Shown piece by piece: positions 45,689 through 58,291 of a DNA stretch of 64,000 bases. Source of the stretch: Amoebophrya sp. A120 (lineage: Eukaryota; Protista; Dinoflagellata). The position numbers and the translations under genes were made by a program. The notes beneath the pieces are model-generated. The model made no database searches, was not told where the DNA came from, and worked only from the letters and a program-made list of their open reading frames with translations. How positions within the stretch are numbered: the stretch's first letter is position 1; the number at the start of each line of letters is the position of its first letter. Where the stretch lies: the NCBI GenBank assembly GCA_905178155.1, contig CAJINV010000007.1:2337151-2401150 (forward strand), given 5' to 3'.

Positions 45689-48600
45689 TCACTTGGACGT
45701 CGACCCGGGTGCCGCACTGGCCGCCGTGGCGCCCATCTGGCTCGCGGTCCACTTGGGGTAGGCCAACACACTGGTTTGTTCTGACCAGACCCCCAAAATG
45801 TGGTGCAGCTCGTTCCACTCCCGGCGGTTCTCCCGGATGTATTCCTCGACGGTGTGTGCCTTCAGGAAGTTGTGCCTCCTTTCCTCGATCTTCTGCTGCA
45901 TCAGCGCCTGGATGCCGGTGCACTCCGCGAAGCACACGTCGAGTCCCGCAAGTATGCATTGCAAATATAATCTTGTTCTACTCTGAGTCCTCTGGAAATA
46001 AAGAGTGATGAACTCGTCGTCGTGCGTGTGGTGGCTCCTCGTCACACGAAAATGATCCGCGTTGCATGACTTGCAAAACATGCCCACTTACTGCCCATCA
46101 AAAAAGGGGCTCCAGAACTACCTGTGATCAAGATCATGTTAAGCCCCAGGCTCCAGACCTTGATCATGTGGAGCTAGAGCTAGAGGTAGAGCTTGAGGAA
46201 ACTGCAAGACAAACAAATAATGATCTCGCATTCGTCCAGACCCAGGAGACATAAATATTTGCATTGGATAGCAATGTAGTCCGACCATTTTCGGTCCGTG
46301 ACCGCGACGGACTTGAGCTTGTGCGCTAACTTGCTGTACTCCTGGCGGTTGTCGAAGAAGTAGAGGTAGATGGTGGTGAAAATTTTCGCCATCTCCATCA
46401 CGGAGGAGCCGAAGACGGAATTGAAGACGTTGTCGTCGATGAGCGCGTCAGCCAAGTACATGAAGTTCTCGTCCAAGTAGTTGACACTGTTCACGGTCTT
46501 GTAGGGCGTCAACAGCGGGATCAACTGCGCGTTCCGTTCGAACCCGGTGCACCGGATCACAATGTCCGCCTCGAGGAAGGTGCCGCTATCTTTCGTCACA
46601 ATCCCGTCTTCCGTGAAGTGGCCGATCTCGTCGGCGAGGGAGTCGAGGATGCGCAGGTGGTGCCCGATGAACCAAATGTCAGATACTGAAATCGTGTGCC
46701 CGTAGTGCTTAATCGCTCCCATCCAGCACTCGGGCATCTTGGCACCTATGGAAAAAAAAATTCTTGGGACGTCGTAGTTGTTTGCATAGCAATTTTTCTT
46801 CAGAGGATACAGTTAAAACGTTCATCAGTCTGTAACTAAGTATCTGCATGGATATGGAACGCCATAATCTACATTTACATTTTCATCTCAGCGTATGACG
46901 TTGATGCCCGATATTAATATGCATGAAACTACCTCCGCGAAACCAAGACAATACCTGTCTTCTCGTACAAATTTCGCCAGACCATCATGTTCTTCGTGTT
47001 GGTCACCGAGTCGTGTTGGAGCCCATCCGCAGAAGTTTTGTTCACGAAATTCACGTAATCGATGTACTTCGGGCAAACCTGAGTGGTGAAAAAGTCGCTT
47101 ATTCTAACTTGCGCAGTAGAGAGGTCCGGCACAAGACAAATTTCATCCTGAAGTGAAAAATTTTAACCCGTGTTGGAAAATTCTTCATCTGTAAGAAAAT
47201 TTTGCCCTGAGTTGAAAATTTTCAGGCCGGATTCTTGGCCTGCCTTGGCTTGTCTGGGTTTTGGCTTGCCAGCCAAGGCAAGAAGTTTCAAACTTGGTTG
47301 AAAAGTTTCGACCTTGGTTGAAAAATTGATTTCTTTACAGAAGTTTCAACCGTTAACAAATTGACTTCTCTGCACCACAAATTTCACCCGGTGTCGAAAA
47401 TATCTGTGCACAAACTTCAACCTGGGTTGAAGATTCTCAACCAGCGTTCAAAAAGTTCTTTCAGTTATCGGAAAAAAAATTTCAACCCAGGTTGAGAATT
47501 CCAAACCCAGGTTGAAAAATCTCGACAAGTACTTAGCATCAAGATGAAGTCATCTCAAAAATTTTACCGTTCCGTGCCTCCTGGCTAAGATCGTAACGGA
47601 ACTGGCCCCGCACTCCAACGCGGTTCTGAGATTTTCCGTGGCAAACGCGCCCATGCCGACGATCACCACCTTTTTCCCGATCCAGTCCAAATCTGCCGCG
47701 TCGTTGCTAAACCCGGACCGGATTTCCCCGCGGAACTTTTCCTCGTCTTTCCACTTGACCTGTCTCGGGATCCCGACGCGGTCGTTGATCGCCATGATCA
47801 CACCACCGGCGCGGATGGTCTTCCCCGTGCCGTTGTGGACGTCCCCGATTTGGATCTCGTAGATCTTCTGGCCGTTTTTGTTCACGTAGGTCACCGGGGC
47901 CTTCAAAAACAACCGGTTTTCCAGCGACGTCGCCACGTGGATCGCATCGGTGAGAATTTCCCTTGTGGTGGAGTGATCTTTGTTCGTGTTCACCTTGTCC
48001 ACCAACCGGTACGCGGCTTCGCTTGTGTTCACCTGCGACCGTTCGTTGGCGAAGTACTTCCAAATCCCGCCGATGTGGTCGTTTTTCTCGAGGAGCGCAA
48101 AGTCCTTCCCCTTCTTCTTCATTTCGGACGCAACATGCAACCCGGTTAACCCAGCGCCGATGACGACCACCTCGTAGAAGTCCTTCAGGTCGGCTTCCGC
48201 CTTCTCCAGATACCGGTCCTCGATGTGCAAACTCATCGGGTCCAACACCGTGCCGTGGTACACCACCGACCGGATTTTGTCGAACACAACCGTATATGCA
48301 TAGCAAAAGTACCATACTAGGTAGTAGTAGTACAGTAAGAATAGCATTACAAATTCCCGAAACATGTGAACAAACATGGTCTGGTGCAATTTGTAATGCT
48401 AAATCAGACAGGAATTGACATCTGTAATGCTGTGCTGCATATTAGATTTACACCGCACGAGTACGATACTTTTGCAATGCATACCGTTTGGTTCGTGGGG
48501 AGCCGGAGGATCTGCTCGGGGTACGCGGGCGTGTGCTCCAGGTTTTTCAGCAAGACGCATCAAAAGGAAAAATCCCCCCTCCCTATATCAAAACGAAGTT

Positions 48601-51600
48601 TCTGATGCTGGATTTGGATACACAAATCACATTTGTGTTGCAGTAGAGGAATGCGCGCAGATCCTGAGCCTAGGCGGGGGCCTTTTGGTGTAGGCGCCTA
48701 GCATAGTAGACGGCTACGCTACCCTGTAGGCCATACAGCATGACAAATCGCCTGCATAAGGTGGCGGACAGCCTGAGTGTGCCTGCTTGCAAGACAGACC
48801 CGATTTGTGGTCACAAATCAGCAACGCAAATTTTCGGAAACATATCTTTTCGATATGGGCAGGGGAGATTTTTCCTTTTGATAAGACGCGCATCTGCATC
48901 TCGTAGAAATCGAGTTGTCCGTACATGTTCTGCCCGCCCGAGAAGTTGGTAGATTTTCCGACGACGATGAAAAACACCGGGAGCTCCGTGTAGGATTTCA
49001 TGTGTCGCGCGACCGCCTCGACGTCCTCCTGCATAATCCAGTCGGGGACGTGACTATGCAAGAAAAAAACTGCGTAAGTGTAAGTCTGTGACGAGGCATG
49101 AAATGCAAAAGTGTATACGCTTGTCATGCTGGATGTTGTGCGTCATAGGCAACTTTCATGCGTGTTTCCACGTGCTAGCTGCGCATGACAGGTTTTCCCT
49201 GTATTAGCTGTAATGCAAAACAAACTTGTGATGCTGTTTTCCCTACAAGGTTACACTTACACAGATTTTTTCCTGGATAGTGACGGATTTCCAGCTGGGG
49301 GAGGTTTCGCAGGGGTTTTATCCTGTGCAAAAGTATCGCACTCGTACTAATTGCAAACATGCGTGACAAATCTTGTTTCTTAGCCAAATCAGCATTACAA
49401 ACTCCATTTTTCCATCTGAAAAAAATTGCATTGCGATTTATACTAGTACGATGCTTTTGCAATGCATAGGTTTCTCCCCGAACCAGTACAAACGGGCCTT
49501 GGCACGGGGTTGGAAGAGGGAAACACCTGTATTTGGTGAAATTCCGTGTGCTTTTCGTGGGGTCTCGTGCATCGCGAAAGCGAAACAAAGAGAGTTCTGA
49601 AGAAAAATTCTTCAGGTTCAGAAGTAGTAGCCTTACCGAACAGCAGCTAGCTTCAGCAGAAAGAAAAACATATTCATATATGTGCGCTGCAAAATATTCA
49701 ATGCACGACTCAGCATTGCAATTGCATGCAGTAGTACAGCGGTGGGCCGCAGCGCGGTTCTTTGGGCAAGCGGGCAGGCGCGGCGGCGCGAGCAGAAAGC
49801 GCAACGAGCTGAACAACATGGACGAGAGGCTCGTGCTTCTGCGTCCTTGAGCAGCTTCTTAACAATCTTGCTGGGGGTTGAGGACCAAATGCTCATGCAG
49901 TTGTTGTGCGTTGACAAATTTATACCGTTCATCAGAATCGACGAGGCCATCCGGGCTCCCATCACCAGCGCTCGGAGCTTCATCACCACAATCTCGGTGT
50001 TGCTGTGGGACTCACTGGTCGTCGCGAACCCGCAGTCCGTCCCCGCTTTCACCCGGTCCGGTCCGACCACCTGGGCGAGCTTGCAAATCCTCTGTGCAAT
50101 GAGCTGCGCCTATGGTGAGCAAAAACGTCCCCACCCCAGAGTGAAGATGACAAATCTGCTACACAAATCAACCAGCTTCGCCTGTTACGCATGACAAATT
50201 TGGGGTCGCAGTGTAGTCGTGTTTTGCTAGTGAAGCAGCATCACAGATCTAGCATACCATTCGGATGTGAGCATCACAAACCGCAAAACACCAAGAGGGA
50301 CTGCTTCTCATGGGTCTCCGCATGAGAAACATTTTCAGCATGCAGATTTGCATGACAACTCTGGGGTGGGAACGTTTTTACTCAGGATAGCGCCGACTCG
50401 ACGTGCGGACTGCTGGTATCCACGCACCCAATCGTGATCACGGCGTTCCGAATCTTCGGCAAAATTTCGATTTCGTGCTGGTGTCTCGGGTTCGCGTTCT
50501 CGATCAGCAGGTCGTTGCAGTGGATGTCGTTCAGATTCTGCACGATTTTTTCCAGCGGGATGTCGCGGTGGTGCGAAAACCCGTAATTTCCCCAGCAAAT
50601 GTGCACCCGCACTTTATGCATTGCAAAAGTATCGTACTAGTATAAAATGCATGACAAATTAGGGCAAGAACGAAAGTGGAATTTGTAATGCGGTTTTGCC
50701 CTAGGAAAAATATTTGTCATGCATATTTGCAATTAGTACAAGTACGATACTTTTGCACAGGATACACTTTCTCCTTCGGCAATCCCGCCACTGCCTGGTT
50801 CAAAGCCTTGATCAACCCTTTTTGTACCTCGACAAACTCGCGGTCCGACATCTTCTGGAACTGCGTGTGCCTGCCCATAGCCAGATCCGGGCAGTCGACC
50901 TGGACCGTGAAACCGCGGGACACAACTTCTTTGTACTCCACGGCCAGGGCGTTCGCCAACGCGGAGAGGTACTCCTCGTCGGTTTTGTAGTGGGTGTTCT
51001 TGAAGAAAAGCGCCAGGGTTCCCGGACTGGGGCAGGAGTAGAAGGCGGAGGAGGGTTCGGTGCCGTTCCGGCGCAGCGCGTCTTCGTAGTTGTCCAGGTA
51101 CTTTTTCAGGTCGTTGGTGGATTTTTTGTAGGACACCTCCCCGACGCAGGAGGGGTTCAACGCGGGGAACCGGGTGTTCAACGTGATCAAGCTCGACTTC
51201 CCGATGAACCGCCGCGCGCAGTTGGGACACTCGGCGACGTCGTGCGGGGTGTAGGCAACCGACGCCGCGTCCCCCGCGCCGAGGAAGGCGAACCCGTTTA
51301 AGCGCGACAAGACCTCGTCGGCGTAGCTCGCCCGGTGCACCTCGCCGTCGTTGATGATGTCCAGGCCGATGTCGATCTGCTGGTAAATGTGGTCGAAGCT
51401 GGTTGCGCCGAACGACCGCGGTAGGGAGCCGACGTGGGTCGTGAGAATACCCCGCTTCTTGCCGGCGAAGGGGCGGGTGAGGTAGTAGTCGAAGGATTCT
51501 AAATCCTCGAACCCGAGCTGCTTCGGCTTCCCGGCGGCGGGCTTCGGCGCCGGCGCGGGCTTCGGCTTCTCGACCGGCTCGCACTCGAAAATCTGCTCCG

Positions 51601-54600
51601 GGTCAGCTTTGCAAGCAGCAGGAGCAGCGGTTTTATTTGCTGCGCTAGTGGTGGCCGTTGTTCCCGGCGCGGCGTTGCTCCACGCGTTCAGAGTTTGCTG
51701 GAAGGCGGCGTCGCCGGCCGCGGAGGGGGAAACGCGCGGTGTTTTACTGGGCATCACAGACCCCTGCTGCGTGACTCGCGCCGGCAGAGCGGGCGAGGAC
51801 GCCGCGGGTTCGTCTTCTTCGCCGTGCCCGGTGGTTTGGATGATAAACTTCGCCAATTTGTCCACGTTCGCGCCCTCGATCAGAAAGTTGCCGTCGTTCA
51901 TGTTGGTGCCAAACGTGCGGTCGAGTTGCAGGAACAAATCCGTGATGGACAACGAGTCCAGCCCCAACTCCTGAAGACTCCGGAACTCGTCATCGGTGTC
52001 TACCCCCATGATCCGGATCAACTCGAACAATTTCCGGTGGACCCGTCGGGAGGACAACTTCTCCGGCTCCGACGCCATGGACATGGTGCTCGCCACGGTT
52101 TTCATCCGCGGCGCTGGGTTGAAGCTGGGGATGTCGCGGTGCTCCATCGGGATGGCTATGCATCGCAAAAGTACTATCGTACATAGATACGTAAAACTTG
52201 CATCACATCAAATTTTGGCAGGAAAAAAGTCAGAGTGGGTATCCGATCTTACCTCGTTTTAATACCAGTTGAATTTGTAGTGCGGATGGGATTAGAATTT
52301 GTTCTTTAAGTCTGCTGGATGCAAGGCTGCACAAACATCTACGTCCACGAAAGTACTTTTGCAGGGGATAATGTCTTCGTTTGTACAAGAAGCGGAGGAA
52401 CTCGAGCGGGTTGTGATGCCCGTTCCAGTCTGGATCACTCTGTCCGGATCGGAATTTTCCCCATTGCTCAACACCACATACGATTCCGTGGTCACACCCG
52501 AGTCACTGGGTGCGCGGGACCGGTCTGGATCCGGAATCGCCAGAGCCGGGAGTTTCTTCGTAATCCACAAGATCGTCGAGTTCGGCGTTTGCTCGGACAT
52601 CAAAGGTAGCTCCTCGCCGAAGGAAACTTTTTTCTCCCCCGCGAACCCGAGCAGGACGTGCGCGTTGCTGCCGCCGAACCCGAAGGAGCTAACCCCCACA
52701 TTCTTGATCTTCGCTTTCTCCGCCTTGCTCGACGGGATTTTGATCCAGTCCGGGCACTTCAACCCCGGGTTTAAGACGTTCAGCAGCGGGTTCCCGTACA
52801 CCGTTTGGTTCTGTAACGTCAGCAACGCCCGCAAGACCCCGGTGACCCCGGCCGCGGACTCCAAGTGCCCGACGTTGGCCTTGGCGGAACCGAGATACAG
52901 CGGGGTTGTTCTCTCCTGTTCTGCGATGGAAAAAGCCCTTTTGATCCCGTCCAGTTCGATGGGGTCGCCGATTCTCGTCCCCGTGCCGTGACACTCCAAG
53001 TAGTCCAGATCTTCGAACTTCAAGCCCGCGTTGCCGAACGCCGCCAGCAACAACTCCGACTGCGCCTTCGCGGAGGGCACCGTGATCAAGGGTGAGTGCC
53101 CGTTGTGGTTCGAGGCCCCTCCTAAAATCTGCCCGTAGAACTGGGACTTGTCCAGCAAGTCTACGGTGGATCGTCCCCCTCGTGTCAAGACGAACACCAC
53201 ACACCCCTCCGAGCGCACATACCCGTCCGCCTGGTCGTCAAAGGTCCGGCACCGCTGGCTGTCGCCCAGGAAGCCGCCGCGCTTCATGCGCTGCGTGAAC
53301 TCCGGGTCGTAGATCACGTTCACGCCACCGACGATCGCGTAATCGATCTTCCCCAATCGGAAGTCGTCCACCGCCCGGCACATGCACTCCAACGAACTCG
53401 CACACGCGGTGTTGAGCACGACGGACGGCCCGCGGCAGTCGAAGTGGGAGGAGATCCGCGCGGAGATAATCGACGGATTGGAGCCGACCACGTCGTAGGC
53501 CGAGTCCCGGTTGCCCAAGAAGTCCTGGTTCCAAACCCCGAAGTACACGCCCGTTCGCGGTCCCTGCAGTAATTTCGGATCGATCTTGCTGTCCTTCACC
53601 GCCCGGTCCGCGGTGAACAGCGCGAGTTGTTGTTGGGGATCCAGGTTTTTCGCCTCGTTCACTCGCATTTGGAATTTCGAGTAGTCAAACGGGAACGGTT
53701 CCATGTACCCGCACTGCAGGTCGCTGAACCCCTTCGGGTTTGCGTGCGTCACGGCGTCGCCGTTCTTCTCGAAGAATTGGAGCGCTTCCTTCGCGGAAGA
53801 AATCTTCCCGGGGAGCCAACACCCGATACCGGAGACCAAGACCGAGCAGGAGGTGGCGTTGTAGCACCCGGAGTTCGCTTCTTCGACGCAGTCGGTCACG
53901 CCCTTCAAACGGTACTTGTGACACAGGTCGTCGAGCGTCAGGTAGCTGTAGAAGTCGTTCGGCTGCAGTTTCGGGAAGTACTTCTTCAGCCCGGTCGCGA
54001 GCTGCGTTAACGACAAGCTGGTTAACCCCTGGGAGAGCCAGTTCATTTCCGGGTTCAAGTCCGCGTGCCCGAACTCGGCCAACAACTTGTCAAAAAACAG
54101 ATCTTCGTCGGTGATTTTGTGCCTCTGCTGCAGGATGAAAAAGGTGGAGCACGTCTCTACCCGACTCATACACGGGACGATTTTCGACTTCTCTTTAGAG
54201 GAACTGCTCGCTTGGAAAAACGACGCCAGCGTCGGGTGCGCGCCGACTTCGAGGATTTTGTCACAGCTATCCGCCACCGTGTCCAGCAGGACAGACACGT
54301 CCACCGGGTGAATCAACCAGTGGCGCCAGTAGGTCTCGATCTGGAACTGCACGGTCCCGTCGTTGACCCCATCATAGCTGATTTTTTTCATCGCGGAAGA
54401 GGAGTAAAACGAGCCGGATCTGATGTTTTTCAGCGTCGGGAACTTCACCGGGGCGGACTTCGCGCAATCCGGATGGTGCCAGCAGTGGCGAACTTTTAGT
54501 TTTTTCGGGTTTTTCTCTGCGTACTCGCTCTGAAACTTCTCGTAGCTGTTATCATTGCCCTGGCCGCAGAACGTTTTGTGCACCAAATTGGGGTCGGTTG

Positions 54601-55267
54601 CGTGCGGGAAGTTCGTTGACGCGAGGTGGAAGTTTCGGTTGCTTTTGGTAACCAACGAAAAGTCGTTCTTGTCGAAAAAACCGCCCGCCATCCAGCCGTT
54701 GGTGTGCGCCTTCATGGAATCCGCAATCCACTGAGCGATCTGCCGGACATCTTCCAATTCCGGGAGGATTCCGCTCGCGTAGAACGCGGCCAGTTCACCG
54801 AGCGAGTGCGCCGCGACGCCGGCAGAGAGGGGATTATCCTTCTTCGGTAGCAAATCCCAACACTCCTCACTGGTCCACAAGTCATACAGGGAGGTTTGGA
54901 GCGCGACGAGAAACAAAACCTCCCGCTCCGTGTCGCTCACAGCGTGCTTCAAATACGGCTGCCACCATTTCCAGGTCGGCGTGTCCTCCAGGAAAGCAAC
55001 GTCCTCCGAGAAATCCTCGCTGCAGACACCCACGCCCGTGAAGAAGTAGGCCCAGGTGCCCGGGACCGGGCTCTTGCTTTTACTCGCCATGGTCTTTGGC
55101 TTATTTGATTCTGTAGTGATTTCTTTTTGGTAGTTGATAATTTTCAAAACTTCAGGTGAGGAGAGCGGTTGTTGGCTCCCGGTCGTGTGCTCACCGCCAC
55201 CACCTTGTTTCAAAGGTCTACTATACGTAGAGTAGTTTGATGAAAGGTCGTTTTGTGCTTGCATCAT
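45689..55267 (-). CDS. Hybrid multidomain enzyme: acyltransferase - ACP - ketosynthase - ACP - MetE/epoxyalkane:CoM-transferase-like Zn domain - unknown linker - flavin monooxygenase (FMO/BVMO-like); ~2,196 aa, 12 exons
   Basis: AT: AAHSLGE, RHCWHH. ACP1: SQGLTSL. KS: LDPQQQL, NTACASSL, ECHGTGTRIGDPIE, KANVGHLESAAG, SSFGFGGSNAH. ACP2: ELGLDSL. MetE-like: TTHVGSLPR, INDGE, QVDCPDLA, VHICWGNY, IENANPRH, AGTDCGF. FMO: VVIGAGLTG, EKNDHIGGIW, VVIVGMGAFA. Eight TIR/DR introns plus three GT-AG introns (49527-49925, 47079-47567, 46746-46954) total 2,988 bp; 9,579-2,988 = 6,591 nt = 2,197 codons. The 49527-49925 junction is the least certain. Confidence 0.8.
45953..46270. mobile_element. Introner-like intron (318 bp + DR gcaag/gcaat)
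   Basis: TIR tatgcattgcaaatat … atatttgcattggata. Removing 323 bp gives WSDYIAGLDVCF. Confidence 0.83.
47160..47520. repeat. Degenerate array of ~20-bp palindromes (TTTCAACC-NN-GGTTGAAAA-like) inside a GT-AG intron
   Basis: About ten variants, e.g. tttcaaacttggttgaaaa, tttcgaccttggttgaaaa, cttcaacctgggttgaag, tttcaacccaggttgagaa, ttccaaacccaggttgaaaa. Confidence 0.7.
48295..48483. mobile_element. Introner-like intron (189 bp + DR ccgta/ccgtt)
   Basis: TIR tatgcatagcaaaagta … tacttttgcaatgcata. Removing 194 bp gives LPTNQTVVFDKIR. Confidence 0.85.
48558..48883. mobile_element. Introner-like intron (326 bp + DR AGACG)
   Basis: ~36-bp TIR catcaaaaggaaaaatcccccctccctatatc … gatatgggcaggggagatttttccttttgata. 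Removing 331 bp gives EMQMRVLLKNLEH. Confidence 0.88.
49055..49279. mobile_element. Introner-like intron (225 bp + DR GTGAC)
   Basis: TIR tatgcaagaaaaaaactgcgtaagtgtaa … ttacacttacacagattttttcctggata. Removing 230 bp gives QLEIRHVPDW. Confidence 0.88.
49319..49468. mobile_element. Introner-like intron (150 bp + DR GGTTT); inverted copy of the 50615-50764 element
   Basis: TIR tatcctgtgcaaaagtatcg … cgatgcttttgcaatgcata. Removing 155 bp gives LYWFGEKPLRNLP. Its reverse complement aligns end to end with 50615-50764. Confidence 0.88.
50111..50389. mobile_element. Introner-like intron (279 bp + DR GCGCC); same TIR family as the midasin 24761-25045 element
   Basis: TIR tatggtgagcaaaaacgtccccaccccagagt … actctggggtgggaacgtttttactcaggata. 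Removing 284 bp rebuilds VESAQLIAQRICKLAQVVGPDRVKAGTDCGF. Confidence 0.92.
50615..50764. mobile_element. Introner-like intron (150 bp + DR CACTT)
   Basis: TIR tatgcattgcaaaagtatcgtact … agtacgatacttttgcacaggata. Removing 155 bp rebuilds the Zn-ligand motif EKVRVHICWGNY. Confidence 0.92.
52157..52370. mobile_element. Introner-like intron (214 bp + DR atggc/atgtc) joining the KS exon to the ACP-MetE exon
   Basis: TIR tatgcatcgcaaaagtactatcgt … acgaaagtacttttgcaggggata. Removing 219 bp (73 codons) removes the stop between two same-frame ORFs (…CTNEDIPMEHRD…). Confidence 0.85.
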
Positions 55268-55973: not shown

Positions 55974-58291
55974 CTACTCTTGTTGCGCAGAAGAAGAAGT
56001 TGACACTACACCATGAGCATTCCTCTCCAAATACCGATAGTACGCTTTCATGTCAATGCCTCTGATTTGCACAAAGTAAGGTAAATTTGGGTGGTAGAAG
56101 CGCTGCGTTTGCGATACGTCATCGCCAAACATCAGAGGCCAGAAGTTCATCAAATGTTGGCATGGGTAGCGACACACCCGATCGTACCAGGTCGCGACCG
56201 GGACGGCTACTTCTCCATCCTTGCGCAGCCGCAAACTGGCACTTGGGCGAGGAACTGCAGAGCTGGCTTTGCCGGAAGTTTCGTCGTTTTGGAAGATCAG
56301 CGCTTCTTTTATCGTCCCCTTGGCGGCTGGTGAAGATCTTGATGTTGTGCTTGGCATTTTATTTCTGCTTGATGTTGTCCAAAACCTCTTCTCCAAAGAC
56401 ACGGACAGCATGTCTGTGTAACTCTCGTAACTCGTCATGTACCGCCAGAAATCCGCGTAAAACGCCGCACTCCTCCGCAACAGCGCCGCGGTTGGCGCGA
56501 CGAAGTGCGCACAGCAGTAGAATTTCAGCCCATTCTCGTCGGGAGGCACCGAGCTGTGGAAGAGCTGCGTGAAAAACCGCTGCCAAATCCCGTCTTCCAG
56601 AAGCCGTTCGGAGTCGATGTAGGAGATGAAGTTCTGCGTCAAGTAGAGCACGGGAACGATGGCACCAATTGTTAGTTGTGGAGAAGTTTTTAGACCAGTA
56701 TCATCTTCATGTGCTCGAGTGCCACTGCTCCGCCCGCCCTCGACAACTGTGCTGATTGCATCCGCAGCGACAGCCTGGTTATCTTCCGCTGTGGAGCCGA
56801 AGTCTTGCGTCTCAGTGGTGACTGCGATCCAATGTTCAGGCTTCACGTCCACGAGTTTCGTTTGCCAGAAGGCACGATGCTGCTCGTCCCGGTTTCTATT
56901 GGCTTCATGGGAATTTTTCCTACCAGCCGGAAGAACGTCAGAAGGTAGGGCTTCGCCCGCTTCTTCCAAAATGATCTCCGACGACGCCGCTGTGAAATCC
57001 TTGTCCGCCACCACCCGCACAGCATTAAAGTCGTTCCAAGACTGTTCAACCGTGAACGCCTGAAGTAATTGTGACAACAACTGCACCGAAGGGAGCACGT
57101 GGTTTACCGCGTCCGCGTGGAGGAAGAAAGTGGCGGATTTTGCGAAGGATTTGTGGACCGAAAAAAGCATCAAATGGGTGAGATACGCGGAGCACTCATC
57201 CGACCTGATGTCTTCGACCACATCTGCTATCCGGAAGACCCCATTTTCAGCGAAGTCGAAATCGGAAGTCGGGACGGGCAGTTCTGAAGGCTGGCTGTTT
57301 TGTTCAACATGATCTTCGCAGCTGTTGCGCGTCGTGGAAGAAGAGGAATTATCTTCGCAGGAGCCGACAAACTCTTTGAAGGAGATCCGGTTCCACCGGA
57401 GTTGCCCTGGTGTCGTGTGGTCTTCTTCTACAAAGCCTCCTTGGTTTTGGTTTATCTGCTGATCGTCTGACACATCATGATTATCAGCGCCATTATTTTG
57501 TCCGTTGCTGCCATTCGCCATGATGTCCTGATTTTTGTTCCTTTCCAGTGCCACCGCTGCGTTCCACACGTTTCCACTCTTCGCCACAATGTTCGAATTC
57601 GCAGCGCTGTAGTCGGAAGTTGGGTCTTCTGGTACATCTTTTAAGATGCGATAATCTGACGCAGCCCCACCTGGTCCACGTGTGGTAGTTTTTCCCTGTC
57701 GTCGTGAAGGGGGCGAATCTACTTCCACACCGTCCAGTAGCAACGCATTGATCCGCCTGACCACCTGTTGATTTTCTTCTGACATCCCGCGAAACAAGCA
57801 TTTCCGGTACAGAAAGATCCGGATCACCTTTCCCTTTCCCCGAAACTTCGCTTCCTCTGCGTAAAGAAGGTCCTCCAACCAGGATAAGTCCTCTTTGCAG
57901 AAAGAGAGAGCGAAGTCCACGAGTGCGGCGGCGGAAGGTTCTTGTGTAGCTGCAGAGAACCCAGATACGGCTTCTACTTGCGAAGGTTCTTCTTGCTCTT
58001 GCGCAGGGAGCTCTTCTTCTTCTGCGGTCTTCGGATGTAGGTCGTCCGGCGACGGTGTTGGGCCGCTGTTTGCTTCCCCGCCAGCCGGAACAACACCACC
58101 GCCTTGCTCTGAGTTCTCCACAACTTCTTGTATTTGTGCATTCCGATGCATCAAGCGCCATTCGTTCTCCAGCTCTCGTGCGTCTTTCAGCTCCTTCGCA
58201 ACAAGATTCGGAAACACGAGCGGGCGAAGCTCGCGGAATCGTTTGTCCAGATACCAAACCTCCCTTGCCTCTTCCTCTGAGATCCGGGCTT
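55974..58291 (-). CDS. DUF3431-like protein, large 3' exon
   Basis: Motifs resembling DUF3431 from memory: VDFALSFCKEDLSWL, IFLYRKC, DECSAYLTHL, TFFLHAD, FYCCAHFVAPTAALLRRSAAFY, separated by long low-complexity inserts. The frame stays open upstream of the listed GTG to ~58310. Confidence 0.6.

Follow-up and report, generated by a model that had tools for sequence, protein, structure and literature searches.

A syndinean, parasite-borne member of the MetE-fusion family, interrupted by eight introners, in Amoebophrya sp. A120

As described by Rao et al. (2024, PNAS; PMC10861871), 'MetE-fusion' proteins join an N-terminal acyltransferase (AT), a polyketide synthase (PKS) domain of the ketoacyl-synthase (KS) type, a PP-binding domain, a domain of the MetE C-terminal type carrying an HxCxnC zinc site, and a CzcO/Pyr_redox_2 flavoprotein. 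They have been reported from dinophytes (Symbiodinium microadriaticum, Polarella glacialis and MMETSP entries), heterokontophytes, chlorophytes and labyrinthulids, with a homologue also in Hondaea, while haptophyte members are without the AT and KS regions; Phaeocystis encodes its ACS/PKS part and its MetE-fusion part in separate genes (PMC10861871). The Phaeocystis antarctica protein goes up at low B12 and MetH takes over at high B12, from which Rao et al. proposed a B12-independent methionine synthase with a non-folate methyl donor yet to be identified, leaving the other domains unexplained (PMC10861871). A second relevant system is the MesD/MesX pair of aerobic bacteria, in which the methionine synthase depends on a partner that uses oxygen and works with a methyl donor likewise yet to be identified (Price et al., 2021; PMC7857596). 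Among dinoflagellates, Lin et al. (2022) drew attention to a subclade whose short MetE occurs 'with other non-MetE conserved domains' and reported metE as absent from Amoebophrya sp. Ameob2, and modular synthases have been reported as almost absent from Amoebophrya (Williams et al., 2021). Here we describe a MetE-fusion gene in Amoebophrya sp. A120, located at 45689-55267 on the minus strand of the window, by which we mean the whole 64,000-nucleotide (nt) stretch analysed (contig CAJINV010000007.1, positions 2,337,151 to 2,401,150, assembly GCA_905178155.1); all positions below refer to this window unless another contig is named.

The locus is one expressed, single-copy gene of 12 exons encoding a 2,196-residue protein with the order AT, acyl carrier protein (ACP), KS, ACP, single-barrel MetE-type zinc enzyme, linker of ~145 residues and class B flavin monooxygenase (FMO). 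Its exons sum to 6,591 nt, or 2,196 codons and a stop with no internal stops, exactly the 2,197-codon frame proposed in an initial annotation of the sequence, and the AT-ACP-KS-ACP-MetE-like-FMO order given there also holds. The interruptions are eight introners, bounded by terminal inverted repeats (TIRs) and direct repeats (DRs), and three GT-AG introns, and both the barrel and the FMO are single-copy in the genome. All searches were made exon by exon, so that the domain evidence is per exon. By published description the gene shares with the MetE-fusion family the AT, PKS/KS and PP-binding domains, one MetE C-terminal-type barrel and a C-terminal CzcO (COG2072) domain in the same order, the lack of a folate-binding barrel, and a distribution that includes the dinoflagellate lineage. 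The family's barrel is of the PF01717/URO-D-CIMS type and ~320-380 amino acids (aa) long; we found a single barrel whose exons cover a whole ~380-aa PF01717 homologue, the zinc motif plus a Glu, an ACP upstream, the AT/KS extension, and a flavoprotein that RNA places in frame. Since this domain set is already published (Rao et al., 2024), the gene is a MetE-fusion member rather than a new kind, and the initial annotation's view that the architecture matched no characterised enzyme is not supported; its own counter-case, that such an enzyme might already be characterised, applies in spirit, the enzyme having been described though not biochemically characterised. What is new is a syndinean, parasite-borne member: the host here is a heterotrophic syndinean parasite, the gene is cut by eight introners, and there is an extra ACP between AT and KS. 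The locus thereby offers a complete, full-length member (AT to FMO), verified by RNA in a compact assembled genome, and corrects the impression that Amoebophrya is without metE-like and modular-synthase genes. MetE-fusion proteins are abundant in ocean metatranscriptomes and bear on which plankton need vitamin B12.

RNA evidence came from two RNA-type contig sets of 2020 (X1 and X4) and two raw RNA-seq runs of 2026 (X8 and X9) mapped to positions 46500-52499. Ten of the 11 junctions, all ten inside this stretch, are backed by RNA, with one contig from each 2020 run (6,571 and 8,278 nt) crossing all ten and 62 to 115 raw X8 reads over each. Single RNA contigs span KS to FMO, read depth is even over exons and across domains and zero in the long introns, and the RNA-type runs contain 0.66-0.69 of sampled words, the exonic fraction of the sequence being 0.688. 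Chance open reading frames (ORFs) are ruled out by the RNA and by homology, and two or three separate genes by the in-frame RNA junctions. The mapping gave no sign of transcript ends or trans-splicing between KS, MetE and FMO, which bears out the single transcript postulated by the initial annotation; of two junctions that it had singled out, 49925/49527 agrees with the RNA, and 52370/52157 needs a small correction, 52157 lying ~5 nt off the RNA-supported 52151/52152. It is extremely improbable that the contigs merge neighbouring messages and that internal spliced-leader trans-splicing, a common process in dinoflagellate gene arrays, yields separate AT-ACP-KS, ACP-MetE and FMO proteins. Dinoflagellate genes are indeed arrayed in one direction, a contig is no proof of one molecule, and the Phaeocystis counterparts are separate genes, but every junction joins coding exons in frame and stop-free with the raw-read support given above, no depth steps occur between domains, begin/end pile-ups are just two, and minor, among those listed, and relatives hold ACP-MetE-FMO in one ORF. 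No spliced-leader-like end was seen among the loose ends listed for this mapping (81 more exist). The two 2026 runs, which belong to the same study, differ ~1,500-fold on the mapped part of the gene (3,020 reads in X8 versus 2 in X9), which suggests life-stage- or sample-specific expression, or a parasite-free sample.

Introners of Amoebophrya have been described as non-canonical introns with inverted repeats of 8-20 nt at their ends and short direct repeats (Farhat et al., 2021; PMC7789003). This anatomy is matched by eight introns here, seven of them RNA-confirmed, which have TIRs of the TATCC/TATGC..GCAAAAGTA type and DRs of 4-7 nt; the seven of the ten RNA-proven introns that lack GT-AG are these introners. 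On the minus strand, intron 1 (52152-52370) is an introner of 219 nt, TATCCCCTGCAAAAGTAC...GTACTTTTGCGATGCATA, with a short direct repeat, its joint 52151>52371 being crossed by two contigs and 77 raw reads. Introns 2 (50610-50764, DR AAGTG, joint 50609>50765) and 5 (49314-49468, DR AAACC, joint 49313>49469) are the same 155-nt introner, present twice in this gene with opposite orientation, and each copy is removed exactly. The other RNA-confirmed introners are intron 3 (50106-50389, 284 nt, DR GGCGC, joint 50105>50390), intron 6 (49050-49279, 230 nt, DR GTCAC, joint 49049>49280), the introner-like intron 7 (48552-48882, 331 nt, TIR ATCAAAAGGAAAAAT..., DR GCGTCTT, joint 48551>48883) and intron 8 (48289-48482, 194 nt, DR ACGGT, joint 48288>48483, 115 raw reads). 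The three GT-AG introns are intron 4 (49525-49923, equivalently 49527-49925; 399 nt, joint 49524>49924, CT..AC on the plus strand, 111 raw reads), intron 9 (47077-47565, 489 nt, joint 47076>47566) and intron 10 (46744-46952, 209 nt, joint 46743>46953, 88 raw reads). Intron 11 (45948-46270), an introner of 323 nt, TATCCAATGCAAATATT...AATATTTGCAATGCATA, with DR TTGC, falls outside the mapped stretch and is based on its TIR/DR anatomy, the frame restored on its removal and an X1 contig ending at ~46271. As RNA junctions and exon-by-exon homology agree, the splice model is doubly validated. The eight introners are recent insertions into conserved coding sequence, and collinearity with intron-less relatives, of which P0132 and P0134 (below) run continuously across the intron 2 site, provides a clean demonstration of eight introners inserted in, and exactly removed from, one coding sequence.

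The MetE-type domain is, by homology, a complete single ('core') barrel that keeps both the zinc and the homocysteine ligands. Exon 2 (50765-52151) encodes the second ACP, a spacer rich in Ala and Pro and, from the N-terminal side, two thirds of the barrel with the motifs THVGSLPR (Ser1208), DGE (Glu1236), HYKTDEEY and VDCPDLAMGRH (Asp1385); exon 3 (50390-50609) carries His1431 and Cys1433 (RVHICWGN) and Glu1465 (LIENANPRH), and exon 4 (49924-50105) the barrel end with Cys1526 (GTDCGF). All four zinc ligands that Price et al. (2021; PMC7857596) list are therefore present (His1431, Cys1433, Glu1465 and Cys1526), and the Glu1465-Cys1526 spacing of 61 equals that of Glu665-Cys726 in Escherichia coli MetE (ligands as in PMC7857596). 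The homocysteine ligands Ser (GSLPR), Glu (DGE) and Asp (VDCP), equivalent to E. coli Ser433, Glu484 and Asp599, are likewise kept. Taken alone the exons match known families weakly, exon 2 hitting 3rpd_A at 0.002 and the NCBIfam methionine synthase PRK04326 at 6e-7 and exon 3 hitting PRK00957 at 0.0027 and PF01717 at 0.022, and a PDB sequence search with exons 3 and 4 alone gave no match. Scans with exon 2 recovered 72 bacterial loci in metagenomes and 24 in genomes, mostly of Alphaproteobacteria (Pseudolabrys, Rhodoplanes), and exons 2, 3 and 4 match the same ~380-aa bacterial ORFs in abutting, collinear fashion up to the ORF end (for example 857-1564, 1565-1786 and 1796-1969 in locus L001). 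These ORFs belong to PF01717 and are named at source 'cobalamin-independent methionine synthase II family protein'. Exon 2 is 26-36% identical to them and exon 4 ~50% identical to their C-terminal end, with 26-43% identity over the whole barrel, and the Amoebophrya protein has the bacterial residue in 53 of the 60 columns whose conservation among 35 bacterial sequences reaches at least 95%, among them THxGSLPR, DGE, HYKTDEEY, DCPDLAMGRH, RxHxCWG, ANPRHxHE and DCGF. The bacterial proteins are stand-alone, whereas the barrel here is fused; no KS, ACP or FMO homologue was found near the PF01717 gene in the 96 loci, where the sole recurrent neighbour is a TctC-type binding protein.

Canonical MetE (E. 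coli, Thermotoga maritima, Arabidopsis) shares the C-terminal catalytic barrel with its zinc and homocysteine ligands, but its N-terminal methyl-folate-binding Meth_synt_1 barrel (PF08267) is absent here, where an ACP and spacer precede the barrel instead, and scores fall far under the curated cut-offs; we accordingly rejected an assignment to canonical MetE (EC 2.1.1.14). MesD is closer in being a single barrel without a folate domain and with the same zinc and homocysteine ligands (Ser22, Glu73 and Asp188 in 3RPD; PMC7857596), and 3RPD is the best sequence match of exon 2 as well as the best fold match of the model of the relative P0134. However, identity to MesD is ~20%, and the fused partners here are of PKS and flavin-monooxygenase type. 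A MesD/MesX pair was rejected because the MesX partner (DUF1852, PF08908) had no match in the genome, a weak negative given that control genomes were silent too. Epoxyalkane:coenzyme M (CoM) transferase, the analogy drawn in the initial annotation, shares the Zn-thiolate superfamily and a barrel of similar size, but the amino-acid-binding Ser, Glu and Asp argue for homocysteine over CoM and the best structural match is the MesD methionine synthase, so that this analogy is now less favoured. The bacterial relative P0180 has been auto-named an epoxyalkane-CoM transferase, and its only NCBIfam match is a sub-threshold methionine synthase. Claudin-like matches returned for the partial barrel by a protein-atlas search were rejected as nonsense, and P0134 had no match there.

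That the fusion is conserved is indicated by relatives found in a search with exon 2 restricted to the barrel (6,434 matches), which carry parts of the ACP-MetE-linker-FMO arrangement in single ORFs at 42-74% identity. The closest, P0132 (299 aa, 74% identical), is continuous over the exon 2/3 and 3/4 junctions, is 88% identical over exon 3 and retains the same catalytic residues. P0133 (464 aa) holds two ACPs and the N-terminal part of the barrel, P0154 a barrel and a FAD domain, and P0134 (742 aa, 42-50% identical) a single ORF running from an ACP through the full barrel and the linker into the N-terminus of the FMO, with exons 2, 3, 4 and 9 collinear along it. These database relatives turn up as fragments only, and the suggestion that standard gene callers would fragment the gene is plausible. 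A quick maximum-likelihood tree, in which the Amoebophrya gene is represented by exon 2 only and long branches are flagged, places it with P0132, P0133 and P0134 in one clade (SH-aLRT 95) sister to the P0154 group and apart from bacterial and stand-alone dinoflagellate forms, the latter being from Alexandrium insuetum and from a Prorocentrum cordatum cluster. In an AlphaFold2 model of P0134, built from an alignment including the exons of the Amoebophrya gene, the barrel has pLDDT >90, and a fold search with this model returned MesD 3RPD first (E 2e-17, TM 0.77), followed by MetE C-terminal barrels. P0133 ends exactly at the residue of the intron 2 site (50609/50765, between ..KKL and R[VM]HICWGN), which could reflect an intron that arose there independently, or a stop that falls there by chance. 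Other fusions in the short-MetE subfamily (entries P0012, P0147 and P0208) include an ABM monooxygenase domain (PF03992) with PF01717 in a bacterial protein and PF01717 with a cupin in a eukaryotic transcriptome; P0208 is doubtful, its weak, sub-threshold TENA/THI-4 match overlapping the barrel.

Upstream of the barrel, exon 1 (52371-55267; codons 1-965 plus 2 nt) encodes the AT-like domain, the first ACP and the KS, all of which Pfam places in a 991-aa ORF at 52292-55267 on the minus strand; the start codon may be either M1 at 55267 or M60 at 55090. The AT-like domain (residues ~72-373) has FxGxG at F75, Ser155 in AHSLGE and His264. It is divergent (PF00698, 35.7 bits against a cut-off of 32.7) though alignable over its length, and in a low-identity, hence tentative, alignment it has no counterpart of the Arg and Gln that hold the malonyl carboxylate, for which reason the initial annotation's loading AT-ACP didomain is reasonable. 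ACP1 (residues 402-450, PF00550) carries Ser417 in GLTSLS, and ACP2 (PF00550, 29.3 bits; ORF 50717-52168) carries Ser1032 in GLDSLS in the same exon as the N-terminal part of the barrel. The KS (residues 476-882; PF00109, PF02801) is 34% identical to bacterial modular type I KSs, and its Cys622, His760 and His801 align with the catalytic triad. All motifs named in the initial annotation (the KS triad, AT serine, ACP serines, zinc ligands and dinucleotide-binding motifs) are thus present with their catalytic residues intact. A search with the 965 aa of exon 1 returned bacterial PKSs only (26-34% identity), its length window having left out relatives of ~2,200 aa. Modular type I PKS modules share the KS Cys-His-His, the AT Ser-His dyad and the ACP Ser, but here the domains run AT-ACP-KS-ACP and an extender AT, reductive domains and a thioesterase (TE) are lacking; a Pfam search of the ORFs of the locus found no ketoreductase (KR), dehydratase (DH), enoylreductase (ER) or TE. 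A standard PKS module was therefore rejected, the KS-AT-(processing)-ACP order, extender AT and release domain all being missing. Elsewhere in the genome the other strong type I KS match is a conventional KS-AT-DH synthase in normal order with a canonical AT (141 bits) at C7:~1409000-1413400 (L097:5584-9405), and a further weak PF00109 match lies on C2.

Downstream of the barrel, the linker is encoded by exon 5 (49469-49524, 56 nt), the micro-exon 6 (49280-49313, 34 nt), exon 7 (48883-49049, 167 nt) and exon 8 (48483-48551, 69 nt), with the joints of all four seen in RNA and exons 5, 6 and 8 in frame. Linker exons gave no significant BLAST match to the relatives; by eye only, exon 7 may correspond to a small beta-alpha-beta-alpha unit of the P0134 model (residues 512-559, pLDDT ~75). 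The monooxygenase is encoded by exons 9 to 12, of which exon 9 (47566-48288) holds both dinucleotide-binding motifs, GAGLTG at 1715 for FAD (GxGxxG) and GMGAFA at 1882 for NADPH (GxGxxA), with Pfam matches to PF07992 (9e-15) and PF13738, the two-site flavoprotein being found in the ORF at 47550-48389. Exon 10 (46953-47076, 124 nt) is in frame with its joints in RNA, exon 11 (46271-46743, 473 nt) is in frame with RNA contigs over 46500-46743 and has a weak ArsO-type FMO match, and exon 12 (45689-45947, 259 nt) encodes the C-terminal end, its predicted phase staying open as far as the stop codon (45689-45691). Exon 9 is 40% identical to residues 581-741 of P0134, and a scan of the genome contigs with it found no relative. 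The closest solved structures are type I Baeyer-Villiger monooxygenases (BVMOs), namely PAMO, STMO, CHMO and 6y48, with which the alignment extends across both dinucleotide-binding motifs. The BVMO/FMO fingerprint, in contrast, is degenerate (FRGEIRSGFSND at 1856), reading FRGEIR-SGFSND in place of FxGxxxHxxxW[P/D] with no His and no Trp, and membership of the type I BVMOs was rejected on this ground. We assign the flavoprotein to the class B monooxygenases, at class level only.

From its domains, we consider the protein most likely to be a methionine synthase, a homocysteine S-methyltransferase that needs neither cobalamin nor folate and whose methyl donor would come from the PKS and flavin modules, a reading that we put at about an even chance of being correct. 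The zinc site would activate homocysteine at its thiol. Without a barrel for folate, another source of the donor is required, and the adjoining ACP, the condensing KS and the O2/NADPH flavoprotein are the obvious candidate suppliers: the carrier-protein/ketosynthase module would make or present a methyl (or alkyl) donor, which the oxygen-using flavoprotein would process. This would echo MesD/MesX, which is oxygen- and partner-dependent and for which the donor is similarly yet to be named (PMC7857596). The reading of the initial annotation was instead a minimal polyketide line in which AT-ACP loads a starter, KS extends it once onto ACP2, the FMO makes an electrophile (epoxide, ester or sulfoxide) and the zinc enzyme, by means of a thiol, tailors or releases the product as a small sulfur-containing polyketide such as S-alkyl-homocysteine instead of methionine. 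The intact KS triad, the two carrier proteins, the lack of KR, DH, ER and TE, the resemblance of the AT to a starter loader, the presence of thiol alkyltransferases in the superfamily (compare the auto-naming of P0180) and the direct fusion of an ACP to the zinc barrel, which suggests a carrier-bound substrate, are all consistent with it. We nevertheless regard it as unlikely and its small sulfur polyketide as the less favoured product, as the conserved ligands suit homocysteine, a thiol of the alpha-amino acid kind, and would be superfluous in CoM-type chemistry, the fold search with the P0134 model ranks a methionine synthase (3RPD) first, the haptophyte member acts like a B12-sparing methionine synthase (PMC10861871), and P0180 itself is only a sub-threshold methionine synthase in NCBIfam.

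A more specific version of the methionine synthase reading, which is pure inference and in our estimate improbable, is a self-contained oxygen-dependent enzyme that would itself derive the methyl donor from acetate. The Arg-less AT would load acetyl onto ACP1, the KS would condense it with malonyl-ACP2 to acetoacetyl-ACP2, a methyl ketone, and the BVMO-like flavoprotein would insert oxygen on the methyl side to give an ACP-bound malonate methyl ester. The zinc-activated homocysteine thiolate would then take the methyl group, regenerating malonyl-ACP2 for the next round, so that acetyl-CoA, O2, NADPH and homocysteine would yield methionine and CO2. If true, this cycle would give every domain a role and would explain why reductive and release domains are lacking and why an ACP sits against the MetE barrel; the degenerate BVMO fingerprint and the migratory preference that BVMOs usually show both weaken it.

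The genomic context of methionine synthesis was searched for by family in six frames and exon-wise, and absences are provisional. No MetH was found (no match to Met_synt_B12 or B12-binding_2, or at the level of TIGR02082), nor any match to Meth_synt_1 (PF08267) anywhere in the genome. There is a stand-alone S-methyl_trans gene of the homocysteine S-methyltransferase type (PF02574, 228 bits) at C1:7024173-7025099, and a Pterin_bind gene elsewhere. If the absences hold, the parasite is without a classical methionine synthase, which leaves the fusion and this single S-methyltransferase as the sole candidates to remake methionine. Several points weigh against assigning that role to the fusion. The stand-alone S-methyl_trans gene could cover homocysteine methylation, and the absence of MetH rests on the six-frame, exon-wise searches. 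Membership of the MetE-fusion family was judged from the published description, and the family's role as methionine synthase rests on expression in Phaeocystis, where the protein is without AT/KS. The flavoprotein has neither the His and Trp of the type I BVMO fingerprint nor the FMO fingerprint. Lastly, the C-terminal half is dispensable at least in the culture from which run X8 derives, since 85% of X8 reads there are frameshifted.

The frameshift concerns a run of six A at 51122-51127 on the minus strand (codons K1308-K1309), which reads as seven A in 132 of 155 reads of X8. Both the assembly and the RNA contigs of 2020 read six, and homologues show that this is the conserved frame. The A7 frame meets its first stop after 225 codons, near residue 1533, with loss of the zinc site and the monooxygenase, and no compensating indel is listed for X8 between 46500 and 52499. 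Either the C-terminal half is largely gone from the X8 culture or its population is mixed, and the complete enzyme is inessential in these conditions. The frameshift could also mean that the gene is on its way out, a still-transcribed relic of the MetE-fusion of a free-living ancestor in a parasite that takes methionine from its host, a reading with which the tolerance of eight introner insertions and the literature reports on metE and modular synthases in Amoebophrya (Williams et al., 2021; Lin et al., 2022) would agree. We consider it quite improbable in view of the uninterrupted 2,196 codons of the assembly and of the 2020 RNA contigs, the intact catalytic residues of five domains, the retention of 53 of 60 family-invariant columns, the same residues in a relative at 74% identity, the precise splicing of every RNA-covered introner, and the strong, even expression in X8, X1 and X4. 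X8 also shows partial variants at 46587 (T>C), 51718 (C>T) and 51863 (C>T). Immediately upstream of the gene lies a 747-aa ORF with low-complexity Ser/Glu/Asn stretches (55974-58217, minus strand), which is apparently a separate gene since the X1 contig stops near 55506.

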